Positions 15,871 through 49,039 of a stretch of 64,000 nucleotides of DNA are shown here, piece after piece. Positions within the stretch are counted from its first letter, which is position 1. Each line of letters opens with the position of its first letter. Under the pieces are notes generated by a model. The model was not told the DNA's origin and searched no databases. It saw only the letters and a program-made list of their open reading frames with translations. The position numbers were made by a program, and so were the translations under genes. Origin of the DNA: Pavona decussata (Eukaryota); NCBI GenBank assembly GCA_977016875.1, contig CDRNST010000250.1, positions 1,116,001 to 1,180,000 on the forward strand. The letters run 5' to 3'.

Positions 15871-17895
15871 GGTCTATTCCAGGGGTGAGGGGTGGGGGGT
15901 GGTGTGTGAGGGGTGGGGGGTGAGTTTAACAGACGTGGATCTAGACTCTCATATACGTGATAAACGAACATCCTGCAATCTCACATGAAATCACGAGTTC
16001 GGGGGTGAGGGTACGTTTAATTTGTTCATGGCGCGAGCTGTGGGGATCTGCGATCCACCTTAACATTATTGAGTTGGACAAACACATAAAAGTAATCCAA
16101 ACTGTGGCTATCGTTTATTGTATTTCTTCTTTGTTTGAGACTCGTAAGATCTTGGATCTTGGATCGACTAAATGATACAACTGACGTCATATTGGTTTTG
16201 ATTCTTCAAACTGTAACAAAACTGTAACTTTATATATACAAATAAACTAGATTAACTTTCCCTGGTTAATCATTTACCATATGGCCTTCGAAAAACCGGT
16301 TGTTAGACTGGTTTGTCAATGATACTAAGTGGAGCAAGCGTCAATACTACTAAATGTAGCTATTGTCATGATACAATTACAAATGTCGTTATTGTCATTA
16401 CACAAACAAACGTTCTTCTCCTGAGATATGAACCCTCTACTCTCATATTAATTCAGAATCTTAAAACTGCAACACAACTGTAACTGTAAATAATCTGGAT
16501 TAACCTTCATGAATTTGCCAAAGTGGCTTGTGAAAAACCGGAATCTAGACTGGTTTTGTTGAATCATTACTTTAACTAGCGAGCAGTTTCCTTCCTACAC
16601 CCCCCCCCCCCTTTTTTTTTGGTGGGCAGGGAAAAAATGTTTTTCCCTTTTCTCGTTTGTATTTGGGATTTGAGCATGTTACATTTCGAATCTTCATTTC
16701 TAATCCTCTCTAGGGTCAGAGAAAAAAGAAAGAAAAAAGTTCTCTGCCTTCAGTTTATAATTTCTTTCAATTTCAGATTTCCGTTTTTCTCTTCCTTGTA
16801 ATCAGAGTTCCATTAATAGAAAACGGAACATGAAAATTAACAAAACATGTTTTTAGTAACTAAAATATGCTGGTATCACTTATATTCGAGAGATAACTCA
16901 CACGACAATAAGCTCTAGTGTATTTGCCGTTGCCGATTAGGGCATTTCAATGGTCGAATCGTCCAACTGAGTAAAGCTTGAGGTTGGCCACTGATAAGAT
17001 TGGTCCTTAAAATTTTTAACGGACGTGCGTAAATAAAGCTGAAGTAACGTGTACTGGGACTTCAGTGGCACAAACAAATACAGCTGACGATAAAATTATC
17101 AATTCAATTCGAAAAACAAACTTAGCACATAAATTTTTTTTGACACTTTCTAATTTTGCATATTTCGTGAAAACGGGAAAATTCAGTCACGCAAATTAAA
17201 TTAAGTGACTTGCCGTGCAAGCCTTTAGAAAATTGGCCAAAGTGAAGTGCTGCGATGTACACTTCGAAATCTCGAAATTCACGTGTCGCACAAAATTCAT
17301 TTAATAATGTACACAAGCCAACGAATCTCATGTTAGTATTCACTGTAGTCATGTTGGTGCTTACAAGCGGAACTATACTGAACGAGGATGCACAGGGGGA
17401 AACTTCCGTCCTTTGCTGCATGCAATTACGATGTCATTTCTATTTTTATGTAGTTTTTTTTTTCAGTTTTCGCTCGCACCAATATGATACCGTGAAAATA
17501 ACCTGCATGGATTACATCTTGACTTGTATCCCCCTCAATAAAAATTAAGCCATGGGTCTCTAGTTATTTACTTGAAAAAATAAGGGGGTGGCCTATCATC
17601 TGAAGATTTAGCCGTAACTTCGTGAGACTTTGGCAGAGTAACATGGTTGCAAATGTCAAAGTATTGACATACACGATGTATGTAAATTGAGTTACGTGTT
17701 ACGGCCGTAATGTCGTGAGACTTTGGAGAGTAACATGGTTGCAAATGTCAACATATATGAGAGTCTATGAGAGTATATGAGAGTCTAGATCCACGTCTGT
17801 TAAACTCACCCCTCACCCCTCACCCCCCACCCCTTATCCCTCACTCCTCACACCTCACCCCCACCACCCCCACCACCCACCCCCCACCCCTCATT
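15871..17895. mobile_element. Non-autonomous element with inverted termini carrying G-rich (GGGGTGA/GGGGGT)n tracts
   Basis: GGGTGAGTTTAACAGACGTGGATCTAGACTCTCATATAC at about 15918-15956 is inverted at about 17772-17810. G-rich and C-rich tracts lie outside these arms. Confidence 0.7.
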
Positions 17896-21352: not shown

Positions 21353-22981
21353 GTTGTTGTTTTATGTGGGAGCGCCATTTGTTTGGTGCACCTCTGTTAT
21401 GGCGCCTGGGAGTGGGACACATAGCCTTTTTGTGTCCCCTACCCCCACAGGAGTAACATGTAATGTTATCATCTATCAAAGAGTACAAAACTTAAAAGTT
21501 CATAACTAATGAAAAATTATTAAAACCCATGGACTCTGTAAAGAATGGTAAAAAAGTTTACCCAAGGAAACCTGTAAATGAAGTTTATTCACAGTAAATG
21601 TCTACCTTAATACAATATTGTTGTTAATTATCTTTGTTTTGATGCCCTTGTTTTTTGTGGGTGCACCATTTGTTTGGTGCCCCTCTGTTATGGCGCCTTG
21701 GAGTGGGACACATAGTCTTTTTGTGTCCCCTACCCCCACAGGAGTAACATGTAATGTTATCATCTATCAAAGAGTACAAAACTTAAAAGTACATAACTAT
21801 TGTGTTTCTGTGTGGGGATCGACATATTAGTCTAATACTCCCAAATTATTTTCGTGATATGTTTACTCTTGCAAGCCAAATACATTCTTATAAAGCAAGA
21901 AATTCCAACCTTTTCTATATATCTTATTGTCGAACTAATCTTCGAAAATTCTCAATTCGATTTCAAGGTCCTACGCTTCTCAACTCGCTAAGTCGTGAAA
22001 TTCAAAACAGTGAAAGTATCAGTTTGTTTGGCAAAAGACTTAAAAAATTCCTTCTTTCTAAGTTAAATTGACTCTTTGTTGAGCTACACACCTTTTCTTT
22101 ACCTTTTCTTTTTCTTCTTCTTTTAAAAAAAAATTAATTGGAATTTTCTATCAGTACCCTTAACTTCTATGGTTTATCCTATAGTTCTAGGAAGCCTATA
22201 GTTAATAAGCCCCGGGCTTCTATATAGGCTTCCTAGCCTTTAACAAATTTAATATTGTAAATAGTTAGGTATGAACATTGTAATAGTAAGAATATTGTAA
22301 TAGTAAGACACATAGCCTTTTTATGCCCCCTACCCTACAGGAGTAACATGTAATGTTATCATCTATCAAAGAGTACAAAACTTAAAAGTAAATAACTTAT
22401 GAAAAATTATGAAAACCCATGGACCCTGTAAAGAATGGTAAAAAGTACTTTCACCCAAGCAAACGTGTAAATGAAGTCTATTCACAGTAAATGTCTACCT
22501 TGATACATTATTGTTGATAATTACTTTTGTTTTGATGCCCTTGTCTTATGTGGGAGCGCCATTTGTTTGGTGCCCCTCTGTTATGGTGCCTGGGAGTGGG
22601 ACACATAGCTTTTTTGTGCCCCCTACCCCACAGGAGAAACCTGTAATGTTAGCATCTATCAAAGAGTACAAAACTTAAAAGTACATAACTAATGGAAAAC
22701 AATTAAAACCCATGGACTCTGTAAAGAATGGTAAAAAAGTACTTTCACCCAAGGAAACCTGTAAATGAAGTCTATTCACAGTAAATGTCTACCTAATACA
22801 TTATTGTCGTTAATTACCTTTGATTTGATGCCCTTGTTTTGTGTGAGTGCACCATTTGTTTGGTGCCCCTCTGTAATGGTGCCTGCGGGTGGGGCACATA
22901 GCGTTTTTTTGTCCCCTACCCCTACAGGAGTAACATGTAATGTTATCATCTATCAAAAAGTACAAAAGGTGCATAACGATT
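21145..22981 (-). repeat. About 290-bp tandem repeat (four full copies, one partial); each unit is an intron plus a 132-bp CCHC zinc-knuckle exon
   Basis: The minus strand reads ag|xDNITCYSCGGRGHKKAMCPTP...NK G|gtaatt (CX2CX4HX4C), a phase 1-1 exon. Confidence 0.85.
21830..22307 (+). mobile_element. CR1/L2-like LINE 3' fragment inserted in the tandem array
   Basis: LPNYFRDMF...HSYKARN...RTNLRKFSIRFQGPTLLNSL...FGKRLKKFLL, followed by a 3' UTR with a short tandem tail. Confidence 0.8.
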
Positions 22982-37879: not shown

Positions 37880-40594
37880 ATGGAGGAAATAAACAGCATC
37901 GACGACCTTGTGTCAAAAGTCATGAATGTTTCCCTTCCATGGGAAGATTTCTGCCCTGCAGAAATCACTGAGTGGCTAGATGTATTCTCGCGTGCTCATG
38001 GCACCAGAAAAGAATTAGTATTTTTCGGAGTACTATCCACCATTGGTGCCCTTTTGGGCAAATCTGAGTTAAAGCTGTTTTCCACATACAAGGAGAGAGC
38101 GAACCTCTTCTTTGTAGCCCTTGCACCATCAGGGGCAGGAAAAACCCCAGCAGCCCAAATAAGCTGCAGTAACCCAATTATGAAATATCTTGAGCCTAAG
38201 ATTGGAAGTGAAAAGCAGTTGTTGGTAGACAACTCCTCTTCATCCGGACTGTTTAACTACTTTTTAAATGAACAGTCGGTACCAATAATGTGTATCGATG
38301 AGTGCCAAGCATTCTTCAGTAAAATGGTTTACCCTTCTAAGGGTGTCAACGATCAGGCACTCACTATGGAGCGTGTCTGTAAACTTTATGACGGAGATGC
38401 CTGGTATTGTGTAAAAGGCAGCAAGGGGAAAAGAAGTGGAACACAGTTTGCAGCTTTGTCCCTTATTGGTAACACGACCCCAAAGTTATTCCTGAAGAAA
38501 ATCTGGGGAAAGGCTGTGGACAGTAAAAATGGGTTCGCGGACAGATTTCTGCTGTATTGCTGCGACCGAGAAAATGTTTCAATTGAAGAGAAAGAAAGTT
38601 TCTCAGAAAGGCTGGATGAATTTCCAGTTACATCATTAGATGTTGTCTACGAGAAAATTTATGCCGAGCACAACACTTCGGACCATGCAGAGTATAAACT
38701 TAGCCAGTCCGCGAAAGAATGCTATCAGAAGTTTGCCAGGGCAACTCCAGAAAGTGGCACAGAGAAATCAAACTCCAAAGCTGGGAAAAATGTTTTAAAG
38801 TTGGCTCTTGTGCTCCATGTTTTCTACGACCGTCTCAAGAAAGCCCTGGATTCCTCTGTTGGTACGACACCCAGAGTTATCACAGAGGACCTAATGAAGA
38901 AGGCAATCAGTCTATGTTCAACACTTTCACATGTCAAGGCATTGATGGATCTGGTAAGGATTTCACTGACAGTTCAATAGCAATATTATTCTAATCATAT
39001 AGTTCAATAAAATATCCATACCTCCCTATAGAAGGTGTTAACCCACTCATCTTTAAAGTACGATGAGGCTTCTTACATTTCTTTATCATTTGTATCTTAA
39101 AAAAACCTTGGAATTTCCACTCTCTTCTTTTTTTTGGGGGGGGGGGAGGGGTGGTGGGGAGTATGGAGCTAACACCCCTTTGTATTTGACAAGAATGCTA
39201 AGTTCTGAACTTAGAGCACTTCAGTATTTCTTGTAGGTTGCTGATGTACTGTATTATTGTAGTCATACAGGGTACAAAGAAGGGCCAGTGGATTTTGCTG
39301 TCAGGCTTGGGGATTTTACCCATCTTCTTGCCCAAAGGGCAAGTGAAAGTTTTTTGGGGAAGTTTCTTAAGGAATTAATTCGGTCAAGCTGGAAAATGGA
39401 ACTTCTTTGACAGTATTACATTGTGTGGTCCAGGAATAATCATACCTCCCCCATGGAAGGTGTTTTCTTTTGAACCTCCCACCCCCTGGAATTTCCAGTT
39501 CAGCTTCATACTTTTCTTTAAACAATTTGGCTGTTGAGACCCCCCCCCCCCCCCTCCCCTTGGAATTTCCATTGACCTTCCATGAGGAGAGTATGGATAT
39601 TTGTGGGAACCACACATTTGTATTGTAAGTTTCCATATAAGCAACAACAACCTTTATTGGCTCTTTAAACTGAATTTTTTTTATTTTATTTGTAAATAAC
39701 ATCAAGAGAGTCTAGGGGGTAAAAGATCCACATTTTTTTTTCGCGTTAGCCCCCATACCTGTTTATACTATTATTTTTTTTTTAAAAAGAGAAGAAGCAG
39801 AACATGGAGCTGTAAGAGATGAAACTGGAAACATGGATTTTAAATTAATATGCGGGCCACATTTTGATTAAAAAAAAAAAATCACTCCTTGGAAGAAGTA
39901 TAATTGTATGCATTGGATGTATGGAGACCCTGTTAAAATACAAGCCTTTATGTTTGTGTTGTATTTTTTTGGGAAGTAGAGCCTACAACGACACTCTTAT
40001 GCTTTTATTCAGGCCAACTGTACTTGGGTAATAGGTCCCCTGAGCTGGCCGGTCCACCCTTTTTACCTTTTTTTTTTTTGAAGTTTTTTTATCATGATGA
40101 TGATCATCAGTAGTAGTTATTCTTCATTACAATTAATATCATTACGATTTTAGGCTGCCACACTGAAGGAAGGGGAGCACACTATTCGAACTGGTGCATC
40201 AGCTGATGAAATAAAGCAGAGGGCTTTAGGTGAAACAGCTGACATGTTCACGACAGCGAAGAGAGTATACACCAGTTTCTCTTCAATTCGTCGCCCATCA
40301 CCTTCTTTTGTAGTTGACCAGTTCAATGAATTGGAGAGAGAGGGTCTTGGAGTTTTTAAGAACATCCACCGCTCTAAAGTCTTTTTCAAGAAGGTACCTG
40401 AATTATTCATCAACGAAGAATACAAGCTTGGTAAACACAATACCACATTCCAGACTTACAAACAATTCTTTGAGAAAACTGATGAATTCTATGACGACAA
40501 TCAGCGCCTGGAGCTCGTAAGGCAGTACCCATGGAAAGAGGATGCCCAAAGGTGGAAATACCTCCCTGTCCCTGAACTAACCCAACAGCAATAA
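37880..40594 (+). CDS. DUF3987/YfjI-like P-loop ATPase (putative helicase), two coding exons 37880-38953 and 40154-40594, 504 aa
   Basis: NLFFVALAPSGAGKT (Walker A), IMCIDE (Walker B), LYDG, SLIGNTTP, NGFADRFL (Arg finger). A phase-0 GT-AG intron joins in frame to the 40244 ORF with no disablements. Confidence 0.85.
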
Positions 40595-42450
40595 GATTTA
40601 GTGCCCCTTTAGTCTGAAACACTAAAGTATGGTTGTTGACATTATCATCAAAAATTATAAATATATAATAATACTGCTCCCATAAATACTTGCATCTGAT
40701 TGGCCGACAGTAGAACAATTTATCATTGTATCACTGCTGAACAATTGAAAATTAATTGTATGACTGTCGTTCAGAGTTTCGCGCCAAAAACGGCGGCTGC
40801 ACCACTGTCACAACTAGTTTCTAGTCTACTTCAAGGGTATTCATTTTGAGAAATTGTCATAAAGGCTAGATTTTAAGTAGACTCATAAAATCAAAGTAAA
40901 CTCATCATCATCAACTTTCAAAGCCAAAATAAGCAAATCAATTCAAAAAGACCGCCTGGCACATTTTTTAATCTGTTTAAACCTGATCTTGCTGTGCTCG
41001 ATTGGATGCTTGTATTTATGGTAGCATTATTATCAATAGGAGAACTGTACTTTTTCTCAAAACAATTAGGGATTAATTGTAGTCATGAACAAATTGGTCT
41101 GATCTTTTTACTCATACAATTAATCCCTAAAAATTTTTATTATTGTTTCTCGAATAGACCGTTTTCCTATACAAATTGATTTTCAAATTATATTCTTCAC
41201 AAAAATTGATGATGCTTCACCATTATTTAAAATAAATATGAAATTTTAAAACCTTGCCCATGCAACATTTACTTTCATGGTGAAAACATATTTGTTTTAA
41301 TCACAATTATCATTGTTACCCCCTTGCTTATCATGTTTTGTTTATCGTGTTGAAGATGTTTCAAAATTGTTAGGGTTGTCAGTGGCACTGCCATTGTTAT
41401 AATAACTACATTTATTTCAGATAATTATAAATTCTTAAATTCTATAATAAAAACTATTGTATAGCTATATGAACTGGAACAAAATAATAAACATTTATAT
41501 GTTAAACTAAAATCACTACATTTCAGATTACCGGTATTATAAGTTCTTAATTTTTATTTATATGTATTTTCTCTGAATTTCAATCTATAGTTATTAATAG
41601 AAATTATTATCATAATAAAAATTATTGTATGACTACATGAACTGGAACAAAATAATGAACATTTAATATATGTTACACTAAAATTAGATTATTATATAAA
41701 TTATCAAAATAATAAACATTGATATTACGAGGAATATACATGTGGTAGTTTATTTCAACTGTGTTATCATGAACAAGCCATAGTCAACTGACACATCCTT
41801 AAAAAAATCATGGAATTCCCTGCTTTTCATGAACAATCTATAAAATTCAAACGATTTTTTCTTCCACATTGATTTGAATCAAATGAATACTTTTGGAATC
41901 ACATAATAATCATTATTAATTAATTATTATATGGCCATGTCTCATAAGGACTGGGGACTACTGAATTGACAAATTTGATTGCCTGAAATCAATATTGACT
42001 GTGGTCTAGATCCTCCCATCCAGACCAGTTAAATTTTACGGTAAAAAAGTTGCAAACTAAAATGCCAAATATTGACTATTTTCTACTAAAAGTGCCAAAA
42101 AGCCTAACAAGAAAAAAAAAAGAGTAAAGAGGGAGGACAAGCAAACTTTGGCAGATTTAGGTTCAGCTCATTGCCATTCCCAATCAAAAAGGTCAGCCTG
42201 TACGAACCAGTTTCATTGAACAAATTACATTGTAGTTTTCTTGTTTGGCCATATAGTAAACATCTTATTAACCGAGCTTGGTCGGTCTGTATGGGAGAAT
42301 CTTGACCTCAGCCGTGAGTACAGGCCTCACTGCATTCGGTATGTACTCATCTCTTAATCTCTTATGATTTTCAAGGTCCTAATAATGATTACAGTACTAA
42401 GATGTTACATTTTTTGTGTTGGCTGCATACAGGAGTTCCATTTCCTTTTT

Positions 42451-45400
42451 TTACCCACTTAAAGCTGCAACCTCTTTCTTCATCATGAGAGAAAAAAGGT
42501 TTTTTTGTCTGATGATCTTGTCCACCCACCTTTTTACTTTTTCATATGAGGGAATGCTAGTGACTCCAGCAGTTGTGATAACTTGCTTAAAGAGCTTAAA
42601 AATGTTTTCATAGTCAGGAGCGGCATTTTCTTGAGATCCCATCAGGCCATTGACCAGCTGCTGAAGGACAAAAATCTCAAAGTCGCCCAGTTTTTCAGGT
42701 GCCAGTGGCTCATTCTTTCTCTCCAAGTACTCCAATGAAGACAATGTGATGTCATCATGTTTCCTTCGTTTTCTGGTCTGCCCTTCTTTGACGGCTGCAT
42801 TTTTAGGTCCATATGGGTTACCACAATTAAAGCATCTACATGATGGACTGCATCCTTGCAATGCTTGAAAGCATTTGCATCGTGAACCAAAGTTGCTGCA
42901 AAATGACCTTTCTTTGTCTTTTGCACCTCCTCGTCCACAAGAACAACACTGTGTCCTGACTTTGTCTGGACTTGCCTTGTTTAAGTCTTGGCATACTGCT
43001 CTCTCTTTTGGGAATACAGGGTCATAGTGACCTTTTCCTGACTGGTTAAAGGCCACGTATAGGGGTACACTGGTGAGTGGGCTCACCCTTGGCAGCAAGG
43101 GTATCACAGGGTAGCTGACGATAGACGAGAACACTACTATTGGGAGTTTTAGTATGTTCGTCAGGGCAAGCAAAACACTGTTTCCAAGTTCATAATCGAA
43201 GATGCCTGGTTCCAAGAATGATTGTGCAGTGTCTTCCAATGAAGATTTCTCAGAACTGGTTAAAAAACATGCATATTCCTCACTGTTAATCCCTAGCCAT
43301 TCAACTACCACCAACTCTCTCAGTACAATGTTCCTGTTAGAGAGGTCTTGGTTCCTGTATATGTTTAAGGACTGTAAATGTTGCTTAACTGCATCATTAT
43401 CACACTCAAGCATTTTATCAAGTGCAAAGGAGATTGAAGTGAAGCAGCAGTCACCATCACCAGGAACTGACATTTTCTCAAAACCATGGTTAGATACAAT
43501 TTCGTCTAGTTTTTTCTCTGCCACCAAATATTCACTCTGTTCATGACAATCAGTGTGGGAGAAAAGGAGAAGTGTTGAGGGAGCATGAATCCAGGAATAT
43601 TTGTTTGCAAGTAGTGGACTTTGTTCCTTTGAGAAAGTATGTGATGTAATTTTAGTCATAGCAACAGCTCTGTTTATGATTGTTTCTTGTGATTCCATAG
43701 TTAAATTTTCATTGTCATCATCTGAATCAGATTCATAACTGGATGAGGCACTTTCCTCCTCGAGATCAATGTCGAGGTTGTCACATAACATACTTAGGCT
43801 TTCACTTTCTTCTCCAAGGGCAGAAAAACAAGGAATATTATTACCAATGCCAAACTTTTCACGAGACATTTGTTCCCCCAAAGTAAGAAATGTCTGAAAC
43901 CATTGACTCACAGACTTGCATATTCTGTGTTCTCTTCCTTTTTGTTTTGCATCACAAACATTTAGTTTGTAAAATGCAGTGGTTAGAAGTGCAACTGCTA
44001 AAGCAACACCAATGCGGTCTTTCTTAAGCCATTTACGCAACCTCTTGTGGATATTCTCGTTGCGGTTTGTTCCAACTCCTGGTGGAATACCTGATAAGCA
44101 GCCCAATCTAACATGCTTCATAACTTTGTTTATTTCAGCTACAGCTTTATCTGGTAGCACCCTTAAGTCATTTACGAGCTCAGTTGACCATTTTCTCAAG
44201 AAGTCCTGCAAGTTTTTTTCCATCTTGTCTGGTGGGGGTGTTGATCTTTTCCTAGAATGTCCAAAATCATTGTCATCCCGAAAACATAATCTCAAATTTT
44301 TAATCATAGCTTGTCTGACTCCTCTCAAGTCAGCTGTAACACCTTTTCTTGGTATTTGATCCAAAATACGTTTGAGGGCGTGGAATAAATCTAGTTTGAT
44401 GGGGACATTAGATCCAAATATGGCATTGATCTTTTTCTTAACAGAACAGCTATTGTCAATTATAATACCTTCCAACTCTTTTTGGGCAATTTGATGCCGT
44501 TCCTTCAGCCCAGTTAGAAGGGACTCCACTGTGTCAATAGATGTACCTCTCGCAAGCTGCCATGCAAGTACCTTATTCTCCTCATTCATGACAATAAACA
44601 CGGAATTATACAGCTTGACCCACCGCTTGTTTTGCCAATAGCCAATGTTAGCAGATATTTTGAACGTGTGGTCTGCTGATAGCCACTTACCATACTGACT
44701 AGCCATATGCTGAGTGTACATATTCTCACAGTCACTAAAAGCTCGCAAGAATGCCCTTGTGATTAACATTCTTCCAATGAAATCCTTCTTTGGATTGAAA
44801 AGGGGAAAATTAGCTGCTGCATTTTGGCGTTGTGAATAGTACAAGAAAGCTCTGCTGCAGTGGTAAGAATTGTGCAAATTCAAAAGCATGTTCTCAATGT
44901 CCTGTATACAAAGCCCAGCCTGAGTACTGCTTGAAATAAAATCAAAAAGTTCCTTTGTCATCCCAGACTTGTGAAACAGAATAAACGGAATTCTAATACC
45001 TGCCTCACGGATTGCCTTCAACAGCTCAGGGTCATGTGCAACAACCTGGTGATGTTTACCACTGCAGAGATACACACATGAGACAAGAAGGACTTGCTGC
45101 TGAATCGAGAATATGGTGCGAGGCGATGTATGGGAGCTTGTTCCATCATTCCATCTCCACATGCGAAGAGACGACTGACAATATGGACAGGCTAGATCGC
45201 ATTCTGTTTGGACCAGGGGATTCCATAGAATAACCGGTGGAATCATATAAGCCTCCGGGTCGTCACTGGGCGCGTGTTGCCCGCCAGATGGATTAAACAC
45301 ATTGCTGAAGCATCGTTTCGCAGCCGATGACTTTGAGGAAGCAATACAATTTTGTATGAACTCTCGCCACGTTTGCGGAATATTAATTGGAACTACCACC

Positions 45401-45462
45401 AGCAAAGAAATACTTAGAAAAAGCACGCAAAAAATGACAAAACTAAGGTTGGTGGACGCCAT
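42451..45462 (-). CDS. Intact 1003-aa DDE transposase (DUF6729/MULE-like) fused to an OTU-like cysteine protease and a CXC-like domain
   Basis: CPYC...YLC...H zinc module; SADHTFK, IIDNSC, KLDLFH, GTNRNENIH; VPGDGDCCF...GHYD; CSCGRG...C...CKC...C...CRCFNCGNP. Confidence 0.82.
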   Translation of the reverse strand: MASTNLSFVIFCVLFLSISLLVVVPINIPQTWREFIQNCIASSKSSAAKRCFSNVFNPSGGQHAPSDDPEAYMIPPVILWNPLVQTECDLACPYCQSSLRMWRWNDGTSSHTSPRTIFSIQQQVLLVSCVYLCSGKHHQVVAHDPELLKAIREAGIRIPFILFHKSGMTKELFDFISSSTQAGLCIQDIENMLLNLHNSYHCSRAFLYYSQRQNAAANFPLFNPKKDFIGRMLITRAFLRAFSDCENMYTQHMASQYGKWLSADHTFKISANIGYWQNKRWVKLYNSVFIVMNEENKVLAWQLARGTSIDTVESLLTGLKERHQIAQKELEGIIIDNSCSVKKKINAIFGSNVPIKLDLFHALKRILDQIPRKGVTADLRGVRQAMIKNLRLCFRDDNDFGHSRKRSTPPPDKMEKNLQDFLRKWSTELVNDLRVLPDKAVAEINKVMKHVRLGCLSGIPPGVGTNRNENIHKRLRKWLKKDRIGVALAVALLTTAFYKLNVCDAKQKGREHRICKSVSQWFQTFLTLGEQMSREKFGIGNNIPCFSALGEESESLSMLCDNLDIDLEEESASSSYESDSDDDNENLTMESQETIINRAVAMTKITSHTFSKEQSPLLANKYSWIHAPSTLLLFSHTDCHEQSEYLVAEKKLDEIVSNHGFEKMSVPGDGDCCFTSISFALDKMLECDNDAVKQHLQSLNIYRNQDLSNRNIVLRELVVVEWLGINSEEYACFLTSSEKSSLEDTAQSFLEPGIFDYELGNSVLLALTNILKLPIVVFSSIVSYPVIPLLPRVSPLTSVPLYVAFNQSGKGHYDPVFPKERAVCQDLNKASPDKVRTQCCSCGRGGAKDKERSFCSNFGSRCKCFQALQGCSPSCRCFNCGNPYGPKNAAVKEGQTRKRRKHDDITLSSLEYLERKNEPLAPEKLGDFEIFVLQQLVNGLMGSQENAAPDYENIFKLFKQVITTAGVTSIPSYEKVKRWVDKIIRQKNLFSLMMKKEVAALSG

Positions 45463-45535
45463 TTTTTGAGACCGCAAGTTAGCAAAACAGCGGATTAAAA
45501 CCATACGTCAAGTATGTGCTCTTTTGTGTGACATC

Positions 45536-45871
45536 GAGCCATCGAACCATCGAACCAACGATCCAACAATTCACCGAACCAACGATCCACCGAACCAACG
45601 ATCTATCGAACCAACGAACCACCGAACCAAAGATCCACCGAACCAACGATCTATCGAACCAACGAACCAACGATCCACCGCACCAACGATCTATCGAACC
45701 AACGAACCACCGAACCAAAGATCCACCGAACCAACGATCTATCGAACCAACGATCCACCGAACCAATGATCTACCGGACCAACGATCTATCGAACCAACG
45801 ATCTATCGAACCAACGATCCACCGAAGCAACGATCCATTGAACTAACGAGCCGCCGATCCGTTAGACCACC
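45536..45871. repeat. 8/16-bp tandem array (CCAACGAT/CTATCGAA/CCACCGAA), probable foldback-type terminal repeat of the transposase-OTU element
   Basis: The array lies immediately 5' of the ORF and ends with ...CCGTTAGACCACC (GG-starting on the minus strand). Confidence 0.75.
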
Positions 45872-45934
45872 AATCATCAGTCTCTCGTTACGGAGTGACG
45901 TCACTGGTGACTTGGTATATGGTGCACCAGCCCA

Positions 45935-46756
45935 ACTTCCACCACCAGCTGTCTTACCATCAAGTCTCTGTTGGGGCATGCACATGTGTCTATACTGTTG
46001 TGTGGACAAATGATTGGACCTTATGCTGTCAAAGTTATCAACTGATGGGAACATGTCACTCAGAAGCTTGACCAGTGTACCTATGGAGTTACAGAGATTG
46101 CCTGGTGGGGAAAGTTTAAGACCATCATCATACCATACAGTCATCATTGGTAGGTCAACACAGACAAGTCCCCAGTGATGTTTGTCTGGCATATGTAGTG
46201 GCATAAGGATAAATTTAAGTTCAGTGGGATGGTGGAGCTCCTTTTGAATGATGGTTTTGATGGGATCCAAATCTTGATTCTTCAACCATGACAAGGCTTC
46301 AGGTGGCAAACACAGAATTGAACAACTCTTTGTTTGTTTCTGCTTATTAATTAGTGACTTTTTCAAGCAATAATTGATGATGACGTTGTCAATGTAGCGC
46401 TCTCCTACCAATGTAGAAAATGATTTAAAATCTACACAAATTCCATCAAGAGAACCAACAACATGCAGTGGGTCATGGTGGCTACTTTCAAAATAGCTGC
46501 AGAGGAATTTGATTTCAGTTTCTCTGAGAGTATACTTGTCAGGGTTGAAATGCAGCCACGCCATTTCTTCTTTAAAGTTGTGTTGCATGTTGGCAATGGA
46601 ACAATATCTCAAAAGGACATCAATGCCACTGGTATTAAAATTTCCCAATGTACCAATTTTGACTCCACTTGGACCATCACTATCATCCAACTGTAAGGTG
46701 TTTGCATCTATCACCTGGGAAGAGCATGTGCTAATGATCTTGTGTGCTATCATCAT
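45935..46756 (-). pseudogene. ULP1/SENP (peptidase C48) domain, broken at the catalytic Cys
   Basis: ERYIDNVIIN...LMPLH...HHWGL...YDDG...PQQ...GGGS[W]. The expected SCG is replaced where foreign sequence begins. Confidence 0.82.
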
Positions 46757-47935
46757 TGTGTGTTCTGATGGGCGACTCTTAGCAAGTAAGGACTATCCTC
46801 TTGAAATTTACCAAAAATAGGGACAACCTCTGTCTCATGGATTAGATTTGCTACTGGAGGAAGCTTAATTTGTGATAACTCTAGCCTTGTTGCAGTTTGT
46901 GACATGCAAAACTTGAGTGGTTTTTCAACAGGTTTTAGAGATTCTGGTGTGCTGCTACAATAATATTATTTATGGATATACATATAAGGATCTACTGTTC
47001 ACACAATGACTTCTAATGGTCTGTGTCTCTCAAATACAAATTTTAGCAATGAATATAATCAAAAGTGCCTCTGAATGCATCAAACTTTAGAGTTAAACAA
47101 ACCTCTTTTCTTTCTTCACAGTAAGATATTTTTCCAAGAATACTATCATCAGCAGATTCCTTGTCTGGAAAAAGGTTCATGACCTTTTGAATTGGCAAGG
47201 AACACTCCACTGTCTTCACAGTTGTTTATGAAAGCCTGTTCAGTGTTGCCTGCACATTAAAAAATAATTAGTTCAAGTCTTTGGATGCTATAACCATTAG
47301 AACAATTAATTAAACTAGGACGGGTGACCATAATATAATAGGGTTTACCTAAAACACGGAATCCGGAAACCGGAATCCGGAATCCGGAAAAAAAAAAAAA
47401 CAAAAATGGAAATTCGGCGACATGAAAATTTCAAAGAAGGCTAAAGTCACTTGGGAAACAGTTTTTATAGCTCTTGAAAAATTGTAATATCAGTCAGGAG
47501 CCCAGTGAAATTTTCAAAAGTTTTCCGTAGATTTCAATAATTGCTTAGGCAGTTGAGCCACTCATTTGGAATAAAGGATCCCAAACTTCAAACGTACCCT
47601 TAAATACCCCCACACCTCTTCCTACTCGATAACATTTCCTCCTGCCATAGCACGTAGATAGACAATGAAACGTAACCAGAGAAAAGAGTCAGTGTTGCGT
47701 TTATCCCTCATCAACTCTTCGCAAGACTCACTGCCTTTGCATAATAATATAAATGGGGGTGGCTTAGGTTTCATCTAAAAAAAAGAGTTTCGAATTGGCA
47801 CCGACCCAGGATAGACAGCAGGCAATGTTATTTATTTATCCGTCCGTCCGTCCGTCTGTTCGATCGTTCGTTCGGTCGTTCATTCATTCATTCCCTTCGT
47901 TCCTTTGCTCACTCACTCACTCTGCCGGCATACAT

Positions 47936-49039
47936 CGTAGTTACTAAAACAAGGAATGACCTAAAATGACCTAAAATAAATCTGAAATATTCTTAAATGA
48001 TCTAAATGAAGGGAAACCAAGCTAAAATTACAGAATTACAACTGAGTGCTTACGAAAAGCGCCGATGGTTAGACGTAAGCCAATTCGATGACAGAGTTGC
48101 GTAAACAAACCGCACTAGAGCGAATCTTTTTTTTTGGTAAAAGTATCGGCACTGACCAATTTTTTTCGAGTTCGTTTACCGGTCGCACATTAAAAGCCAC
48201 ACGACAAGGCTAAATACTTCTGTAAACACTGATAAAACGCTTTTGAAAACAATGTAAAGGCATATCTGTGCATCAATAGGCCTTATCACGGTTTTCGGTA
48301 TTTTTTCCCGCGAACTATTTTTAGTAGCAGTACATGGCTGGTTCGCTTTGCAGACAAATGTATGAAAAATTCAAAACACGACTGGACGCTTTCTGGCACA
48401 GCTACGTCCCTCCAATTTTTTTTCTTAATCCTCTTTCTAGTGCCAAAAGTTTCCAATTCATGAATTTTTTAGAAGCAATGTTTTATCAAAATTATTTGAC
48501 ATTGGATTTCCATACAAACACTGTTTTTTCAAGCCTGTTTGCCTACTCGTCAAAATAACGCCGAAAACCGTGATAAGGACACGCAGTTAACAAGTTAAGG
48601 GTAGCGCATGAATAAAAGATAACTCTGTGCCAGTTCCATATGAAATAGCTGCATCAATCAATACCGCGTTGCTGGGCGAAACATAGAACTTCGCTTCGTA
48701 CCAATAAAAAACCGCGTTGCTGGGAAAAAACTAGGCACTTCGAACCAAGCAAAACCATGTTGCTGAGCGAAACTTGGAACTTCGCACAAATCAAAACCAC
48801 GTTGCTGGGGAAAAACTAGACACTTTGCATCAATCAAAGCCTGTTGTGATACAGTAATTATCGGGAATTTCCTTGCAGAAGTCTCCGGTAGAGACGAAAC
48901 GCGTCGGAAATAAACTACAAGAAGTCTTCTGTTGGGCTGCTCACTAGTCTTTGCTATAAAATTAAAAAAATAAAATCATTTTAGGTCATTTTAGGTCATT
49001 TTAGATCATTTTAGGTCATTCCTTGTTTTAGTAACTACG
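47936..49039. mobile_element. Nested MULE-like MITE, 10-bp TSD CGGCATACAT
   Basis: CGTAGTTACTAAAACAAGGAATGACCTAAAAT... and its reverse complement; identical 10-bp flanks. Confidence 0.93.
48281..48578. mobile_element. Third-level nested MITE
   Basis: CCTTATCACGGTTTTCGG / CCGAAAACCGTGATAAGG. An end of the same family occurs at about 34610-34655. Confidence 0.75.

Follow-up and report, generated by a model that had tools for sequence, protein, structure and literature searches.

The stretch of DNA analysed here, referred to as the window, is 64,000 bp of the genome of Pavona decussata (GenBank assembly GCA_977016875.1, contig CDRNST010000250.1, positions 1,116,001 to 1,180,000 of the forward strand). 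Analysis of the window revealed a transposon copy of approximately 9.0 kb on the reverse strand, between 36931 bp and 45932 bp, with a complete right end and with its left terminal array and terminus gone. Three open reading frames (ORFs) were found to be encoded in it. The longest (42451–45504, reverse strand) is a single-exon ORF of 1017 amino acids (aa) with no internal stop, which encodes a transposase fused to an OTU cysteine-protease domain and a CXC domain. A DUF3987 gene (37880–38980, forward strand), convergent with the transposase gene, encodes a helicase-like P-loop protein of 366 aa. The conserved third gene, ORF3 (40244–40594, forward strand), encodes 116 aa and has no recognisable family. 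The initial annotation of this locus recognised the fusion gene and confined the feature to 42451–45871; this span was too short, as the element extends well to the left of it, and the two further conserved genes had been overlooked. We put at roughly 85% the probability that this stretch is a young, defective copy of a ~9.5-kb class II (DDE, cut-and-paste type) DNA transposon, from a large unnamed lineage with affinity to IS256/Mutator, to which the DUF6729 proteins of Pfam are sister.

Copies, ends and target site duplications

A six-frame tblastn search of the organism's own 602-Mb assembly with the transposase returned at least 45 matches. Copies of the element that were 97–99% alike were present at six loci, and the same genome held many diverged transposase lineages with 23–41% identity. 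A second full-length open copy of the transposase was found at locus C195 (99% identical to the window), and transposase fragments that were 97–98% identical were found at C166, C20 and C186. Comparison of the flanks showed the complete copy at C166 to share 99% identity with the window over 9013 bp (window 36931–45933); the last base of the window copy is 45932. Beyond this common terminus the flanks of the copies differed from each other. The terminal 88 bp of the element occurred ten times, at six loci, and the 525 bp of the left internal region occurred four times. The copies at C20 and C186 had lost their interior and retained both ends. At C318 (939522–939880), which is among the six loci carrying the terminal 88 bp, only approximately 360 bp separate a left terminus of 99% identity from an incomplete right terminus; this pair of termini may be a miniature derivative without nearly all of the internal sequence.

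All copies terminate alike. The right terminal 75 bp of the window copy (45858–45932) is non-repetitive and ends at 45932 in the sequence ...CACCAGCC, which is common to all copies. Reading inward, the end starts with 5′-GGCTGGTGCACC, so that the terminus itself is 5′-GGCT, and it contains a subterminal ..AAGTCAC..GTGACGTCA motif. Next to it lies a subterminal array (45535–45857) that Tandem Repeats Finder (TRF) resolved into 20 copies of a 16-bp unit with an 8-bp sub-period and that stops approximately 30 bp upstream of the transposase ATG. This is the 8/16-bp array that had been seen upstream of the gene initially. The accompanying remark that only one end is visible holds for the window copy, as an inverted self-comparison of 34000–48000 was empty and the array of the C166 copy, when compared with the whole window, matched solely at 45503–45936. 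Other copies show both ends. Inside each terminus of the complete copies there are 8/16-bp repeat arrays of 400–480 bp in mutually inverted orientation, and the array was inverted at the opposite end in C166, C186 and C20 and also in L021, an element from another sample.

The search for other copies, which had been proposed as a means of locating the second terminal inverted repeat (TIR) and the target site duplication (TSD), yielded both, namely inverted arrays together with 8-bp duplications on C166 and C186. The C166 copy has the 8-bp TSD CGAAACGG on both sides and the C186 copy is flanked by AACAGTAC, also of 8 bp. Two elements of more distant lineages gave the same result: the C90 element, whose transposase is 37% identical to that of the window, is flanked by the 8-bp TSD GAAATTTT, and the L034 element, from another assembly and with a 44% identical transposase, by the 8-bp TSD CAAAATTA. 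The TSD was therefore 8 bp in four of four elements, which represent three lineages. Long TIRs and a TSD of 8 bp fit the IS256/Mutator group, the TSDs of Mutator-like elements (MULEs) ranging from approximately 8 to 10 bp. As the element is multicopy, has inverted ends and is bounded by 8-bp target duplications, it is not a single-copy, syntenic host gene. Dispersed copies, inverted termini, fixed-length TSDs and an RNase H-like core with an acidic triad are all characters of class II elements of the TIR order, and each of them was found.

The ends were also compared across lineages. The terminal 40 bp had in common a GG..T start and a ..GTCAC..GTGACGTCA motif, and the GG..T start and the TGACGTCA motif were also present in the lineages with 37% and 44% identical transposases. 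A perfect TGACGTCA palindrome, which is a CRE/ATF-type site, was found 30–45 bp inside the terminus in three lineages whose transposases are 37–44% identical, that is, within window positions 45858–45932, at the ends of the C90 element, and in L034 at 8650–8700 and 17600–17650. The palindrome could be a putative transposase-binding site, or a host-factor or promoter site.

Domains of the transposase

The transposase ORF has 1017 codons from its first ATG (Met1) and 1003 codons from Met15 (45460–45462); the latter matches the single-exon ORF of 1003 aa reported initially. A stop codon lies two codons upstream of Met1 and the frame therefore cannot extend further. The D/D/DxxH/E motifs that had been read from the sequence were all present: D278 (in DHTFK), D350 (in IDNSC), D372 and H375 (D372xxH375, in LDLFH) and E483 and H486 (E483xxH486, in NENIH). 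Conservation was assessed in a set of 48 relatives with 21–31% identity to the window protein. D278 was kept in 42 of 47, D350 in 43 of 48, D372 in 47 of 48, H375 in 43 of 48, E483 in 45 of 48 and H486 in 44 of 48; the triad of D278, D350 and E483 was thus kept in 89–94% of the relatives. Cysteines follow the second aspartate, with Cys352 present in 45/48 relatives and Cys353 in 48/48.

The ratio of nonsynonymous to synonymous substitution rates (dN/dS) was calculated against the 70% identical L021 homologue. It was 0.16 for the whole ORF, 0.11 for the DDE core, 0.15 for the OTU domain and 0.20 for the CXC domain; the low values show that all three parts have been kept by selection in the lineage. 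A phmmer search with the core (aa 85–575) against 1.84 billion cluster representatives matched 1765 clusters, defined at 50% identity, at E ≤ 1e-3 and 845 clusters at E ≤ 1e-10, and the family is therefore large. Look-ups of the clusters holding transposase relatives gave no informative names or organisms.

The OTU domain (43000–43524, reverse strand) was identified from its predicted fold. A model of aa 640–1017 had a predicted local distance difference test (pLDDT) score of 85.5, and Foldseek superposed the OTU region on OTUD1, OTUD3 and yeast Otu2 with target-normalised template modelling (TM) scores of 0.73–0.80 and a probability of 1.00. By sequence, the family profile matched OTUD3 and A20, and the Pfam OTU and C65 models, which were below cut-off in the window protein, reached E 2e-8 in relatives. 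The intact OTU cysteine and histidine motifs that had been noted initially, GDGDC (D683-G-D-C686) and GHYD (H826-Y-D828), were both present, and the OTU fold was predicted as expected from them. Cys686, His826 and Asp828 are what we take to be the catalytic triad, after yeast Otu1. The cysteine was found in 29 of 41 relatives, the histidine in 26 of 44 and the aspartate in 21 of 44.

The OTU domain may be a self-processing protease that cuts the fusion protein, for instance freeing the transposase from its hydrophobic N-terminus or its CXC tail, and not a deubiquitinase of host targets. Such self-processing has been proposed for OTU-fused MULE transposases of Medicago (PMC1702500), and the linkers at aa 561–660 and at approximately aa 835–853 are poorly conserved or have lower model confidence. 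We nevertheless regard self-processing as unlikely, as the domain superposes on bona fide deubiquitinases (the OTUD1, OTUD3 and Otu2 matches above) and the alignments revealed no conserved cleavage motif of a Gly-Gly-like type, the latter being a weak negative. The anti-silencing function that was suggested for the OTU domain initially is pure conjecture.

Downstream of the OTU domain is a nine-cysteine CXC domain of the MSL2/tesmin type (42814–42948, reverse strand), with its cysteines at aa 854–894. The family profile matched the CXC domain of MSL2 (PDB 2LUA) at E 1.9e-5 and the Pfam MSL2-CXC model matched 17/48 relatives; the window protein alone gave no MSL2-CXC match at E ≤ 0.1, which was the limit of the scan. 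The nine cysteine columns were approximately 100% conserved in relatives having the domain, which bears out the Cys-rich tail described initially.

The hydrophobic stretch near the N-terminus that had been likened to a signal peptide or a transmembrane helix is present at aa 20–38 (45391–45447, reverse strand). It has the look of a membrane anchor or signal peptide and is a recurrent feature of the family. A strongly hydrophobic stretch of 12 residues was found within the first 45 residues in 14 of the 39 relatives that have at least 35 residues before the core, compared to 3.6% of internal control windows, a ten-fold enrichment. Many of the relatives' N-termini resemble classical signal peptides, with a short charged start, a hydrophobic run and small residues. 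The dN/dS ratio was 0.6 for aa 1–40, the sequence of which is not conserved, and 0.21 for aa 41–84, which are constrained; an unconstrained segment beside a constrained one is the pattern expected of signal peptides, and aa 1–40 may be of this kind. An over-extended gene call was considered as the cause of the hydrophobic N-terminus. Met1 and Met15 are the only in-frame ATGs upstream of the constrained aa 41–84, so this segment can be reached from these two alone, which together with the ten-fold enrichment argues against such an error; a non-ATG start or a splice could still be the cause.

Relationship to IS256, Mutator and DUF6729

The RNase H-like DDE core and its all-helical insertion are encoded between 43825 bp and 44724 bp (reverse strand) and carry D278, D350, D372xxH375 and E483, with S352 where the family has a cysteine. 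The AlphaFold model of the core, built with 66 sequences, had a pLDDT of 92.3 and a predicted TM-score (pTM) of 0.90. It showed an RNase H-like sheet with helices and an all-helical insertion of approximately 100 residues ahead of the helix that carries E483. The top Foldseek match of the core was the transposase of ISCth4, a member of the IS256 family (E 4e-9). On structural re-alignment ISCth4 gave a Z score of 16.6 over 269 residues, compared to 10.5 for the prototype foamy virus (PFV) integrase, 10.1 for Hermes and 9.6 for the P element transposase. The prediction of an RNase H-like fold is thus of high confidence and, among solved structures, a transposase of the IS256 family comes closest to it; as IS256 is the bacterial kin of Mutator/MULE, the MULE-like placement made initially is supported.

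Sequence comparisons pointed in the same direction. The NCBIfam IS256 model weakly matched 13/48 relatives (best E 1.8e-6) and the ISLre2 model 6/48. Faint Pfam matches among the 48 relatives were to DDE_Tnp_ISL3 and, in one relative (3.5e-4), to the MULE-derived RNase H-like domain of ZSWIM1-3. Mutator/MULE clusters were found in the ESM Atlas at scores of 0.82–0.84, which we treat as a lead only.

The N-terminal domain (aa 85–260; 44725–45252, reverse strand) is beta-rich, with conserved Cys106, His/Cys109 and Cys147, followed by helices, and was modelled with a pLDDT above 90. It is the part of the protein that is matched by DUF6729 in relatives: the Pfam model matched 11/48 of them at this domain (best E 1.3e-12), and the nearest clusters in the ESM Atlas were DUF6729 clusters, with a score of 0.96. 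An hhalign comparison of the family profile with a true DUF6729 protein, L026, gave a probability of 98.9% and an E value of 1.4e-17 over 336 columns, with the motifs in the same order. The gathering cut-off of the DUF6729 model was not reached by the family: the window protein gave no match and the genome scan with the model misses the family's loci. Against Pfam as a whole, the window protein matched no transposase family and had only sub-threshold matches to OTU and C65. As no Pfam transposase model matches the protein and the literature searched held nothing for DUF6729, its nearest Pfam relative, or for PF20499, the initial description of the lineage as poorly characterised was apt.

Bona fide DUF6729 genes, with E values down to 1e-90, were found in tandem in the same genome, five within 32 kb (C195:2679262–2711050) and two at C13:1452307–1459277; L026 and L027 come from these two clusters. 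They have the same order of D / DxCC / DxFH / ExxH motifs as the transposase. These loci look like a gene cluster and not like dispersed transposon copies.

The family could instead be a member of the KDZ (Kyakuja-Dileera-Zisupton) group in which an OTU domain stands in for Ulp1. It has 8-bp TSDs, as does Zisupton, which carries Ulp1 (PMC12730594), it combines Cys-rich domains and a papain-like protease with a transposase, and such elements do occur in this genome. We consider this improbable. The KDZ transposase model, Pfam PF18758, has 21 matches elsewhere in the genome but does not match any locus of the family, and neither it nor CxC1-7 matched any of 65 relatives. The CXC domain is C-terminal and of the MSL2 type, unlike the KDZ-associated CxC cluster, and the best sequence and fold matches are to IS256. 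A TSD of 8 bp does not discriminate, being shared by hAT, P and some MULEs. The 21 places (for example L022–L025) are multi-exon matches to the KDZ model and indicate that the genome also harbours elements of the Zisupton/KDZ type, separate from the present family. Judged from sequence matches and predicted structures, we conclude that the family is probably Mutator/IS256-like and a sister of DUF6729, and is not a recognisable KDZ member.

Several observations weigh against the reading of the element as a functional Mutator/IS256-like lineage that lacks a name. The Pfam models MULE (PF10551), Transposase_mut (PF00872) and Mutator (PF20700) matched none of the 65 relatives, searched at E ≤ 1 (17 relatives) or E ≤ 0.01 (48 relatives). 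The IS256/Mutator placement therefore rests on the fold and on weak, recurrent sequence matches, and as the curated models are unmatched, we call the family Mutator-like and do not file it as a member. The family may already bear a name in Repbase or Dfam. An N-terminus resembling a signal peptide would not be expected of an enzyme that works in the nucleus. Finally, the contigs from sequencing runs that were guessed to be of RNA speak neither for nor against transcription: coding and spacer regions were covered alike, at low depth and with no splice joints in the ORF, and the runs may be low-coverage DNA.

Companion genes, decay of the window copy and known systems

The DUF3987 protein has a Walker A motif (GAGKT) at aa 85 and a Walker B motif (IDEC) at aa 139. 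It matched Pfam PF13148 at E 5.6e-22 with 78.9 bits (cut-off 27), the match covering only profile positions 116–355 of 364. A sequence search of the PDB with the protein was empty. The gene is 69% identical to the L021 copy, with synonymous divergence (dS) saturated, and its nearest named relatives are from the stony corals Desmophyllum pertusum and Acropora millepora. Linkage of DUF3987 and transposase genes was found in L021, L034, L035, C90 and C8. ORF3 is 59% identical in L021, where it starts at the same place, and tblastn detected it in the C90, C88 and L034 elements (E 2e-9 to 7e-5). It had no Pfam match, and its matches in the ESM Atlas were all below 0.9, with few shared features, and were treated as chance.

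The module as a whole recurs at 36–70% identity in other lineages and assemblies. In L021, inverted 8/16-bp arrays lie at both contig ends and enclose a transposase, ORF3 and DUF3987. L034 has inverted 27-bp arrays and the same genes. The C90 element (1874131–1893382) is 19 kb long and has inverted 17-bp arrays of 46 and 38 units together with DUF3987 and ORF3. Near the L034 element, at 2952–3599 and 21524–22390, a DNA_pol_B_2 gene and an rve integrase gene were found, which suggests that these neighbours are Polinton/Maverick-like.

The window copy, described initially as intact, is intact in its transposase reading frame; the element as a whole is not, having lost its left end and carrying a C352S change beside the catalytic D350. 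The truncated left side abuts an 85-bp satellite (36264–36932) that belongs to the flank and not to the element. A paralogous repeat on C54 has the same 85-bp satellite approximately 150 bp from a ULP1 segment of the type that flanks the right end of the window copy. The element therefore sits inside a ULP1-bearing repeat, of which the satellite appears to be a part, and the left array and terminus were removed by a later deletion across the left junction. The serine at position 352, two residues after D350, is found in the window copy alone: it is unique among the 48 relatives, and the sister copy at C195 retains the cysteine. Comparison of the window and C195 frames revealed 11 nonsynonymous and 2 synonymous differences, so that there has been no constraint since insertion. 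From the missing left end and the C352S change, the window copy is non-autonomous and probably inactive.

The other copies are also defective. The C195 copy is likewise one-ended and breaks off at the position corresponding to 38655. At C166 both ends are present and the DUF3987 frame is open, but the transposase contains stops. No copy in the assembly is complete in every respect, and both full-length open transposase frames, in the window and at C195, are in one-ended copies. Mobilisation in trans of the copies that keep both ends, at the three loci C166, C20 and C186, is conceivable. The C20 and C186 derivatives carry filler DNA in place of their lost interior; a region elsewhere in the window (9835–10239) shares 85% identity with this filler and is therefore itself a repeat.

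Although the restriction of the open frames to one-ended copies, and the presence of the same 1017-aa product in several assemblies, could be taken to mean that the frame was domesticated by the host, as a deubiquitinase or chromatin protein of transposase origin that was retained when the element lost one end, this is highly improbable, as the window and C195 copies lie in unrelated flanks, are 99% alike and so very young, differ by an excess of nonsynonymous changes that shows no purifying selection since insertion, and in the window a near-invariant cysteine has been lost. For annotation purposes, the 1017-aa gene belongs to a transposon, of which this copy is dead.

The broken ULP1 gene that was mentioned initially as a neighbour does abut the element, and belongs to a different repeat. 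It is a 274-aa Peptidase_C48 fragment (45934–46756, reverse strand) of a separate multicopy family with 39 genomic matches, many of them in open frames of 500–600 aa, and shares 81% identity with the nearest copy, on C54. Its frame is interrupted by the element's right terminus. The possibility that ULP1 is a gene of the element, as in Zisupton, was rejected, as it is absent from the flanks of the other copies and belongs to the separate family of 39 matches.

Read as a Mutator/IS256-like transposon, the element would move as follows. The zinc domains of the transposase would bind the repeat units and the terminal motif; the transposase would pair the ends, and its DDE site would cut and join DNA, with target cuts staggered by 8 bp. 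The OTU domain might strip ubiquitin, or a modifier resembling it, either from the transposase or from chromatin or repair factors at the break, and the DUF3987 ATPase might aid in handling the DNA, by unwinding it or by acting as a helper in the manner of MuB/IstB.

Like Mutator/MULE and IS256 elements (ISCth4, PDB 6XGX), the family has an RNase H-like DDE core with an all-helical insertion before the catalytic glutamate, a D/CxxH motif after the second aspartate, a zinc-type N-terminal domain, long TIRs and 8-bp TSDs. It differs from Mutator/MULE in that no SWIM finger was detected and in its C-terminal OTU and CXC domains, DUF3987 ATPase, ORF3 and signal-like N-terminus. With the DUF6729 proteins it shares a homologous N-terminal domain and core up to the DxxH motif, whereas the frame of L026, the one example read, comprises 543 aa and stops shortly beyond the core, with no OTU or CXC domain seen in it.

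Papain-like ubiquitin or SUMO proteases fused to, or carried with, transposases are also found in Ginger1, Helitrons, Medicago MULEs, KI-MULEs and Zisupton; OTU or Ulp1 domains are fused to Ginger1 transposases and OTU domains occur in animal Helitrons (PMC2836005). Unlike the family studied here, Ginger1 has a retroviral-type integrase and Helitrons have a Rep/helicase protein, and no CXC domain, DUF3987 gene or arrayed ends have been described in any of these five groups. Foldback-type elements resemble the family in that its complete copies have inverted arrays of 400–790 bp, with units of 8–27 bp, at both ends, which accords with the foldback-like end described initially. They differ in that the arrays here are subterminal, with a unique, conserved terminal sequence of 40–75 bp outside them, and in the full coding module.

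A DDE transposase beside a Walker A/B ATPase is likewise found in Mu (MuA/MuB), IS21 (IstA/IstB) and Tn7 (TnsB/TnsC), and the helper role of the ATPase in these systems is the analogy drawn here for DUF3987. In one bacterial element, the DUF3987 protein was demonstrated experimentally to act as a 5′-3′ helicase (PMC11724360). Unlike the bacterial DUF3987 helicases (AgaPH), the one described here is hosted by an animal and has no primase-polymerase partner. The literature search found no paper that ties DUF3987 to eukaryotic transposons, the domain otherwise being discussed for bacterial and phage elements only, and in the literature searched an IS256-like core, OTU domain, MSL2-type CXC domain, DUF3987 gene, ORF3 and arrayed ends were not found in combination.

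The lineage is coherent, widespread, essentially undescribed and Mutator-like. A bolder reading, possible though doubtful, is that the IS256/Mutator-related transposons of eukaryotes include an unnamed lineage of superfamily rank, of which this would be the first member to be dissected. Its elements would move as a module of three genes by an ATPase-assisted mechanism (MuB/IstB-like or IS256-like copy-out), and the transposase would have a genuine signal or anchor of the endoplasmic reticulum (ER) type. To our knowledge, such an ATPase-assisted mechanism is known in no eukaryotic TIR transposon. If this were true, nuclear delivery of the transposase would be controlled at a membrane, perhaps helped by its own OTU domain.

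The family gives a function and a mobile-element context to 1765 unannotated protein clusters and to the sister DUF6729 proteins. The role of the protease has never been established in the transposases fused to ubiquitin or SUMO proteases, namely those of Ginger1, Helitrons, MULEs and Zisupton. With single-exon genes, defined ends, 8-bp TSDs, young copies and a conserved partner ATPase, the family is a clean system in which to test it. Neither a helicase-like helper ATPase in a cut-and-paste element of animals nor the recurrence of a signal-like N-terminus on a transposase was expected; if real, both features bear on the regulation of transposition in animals.

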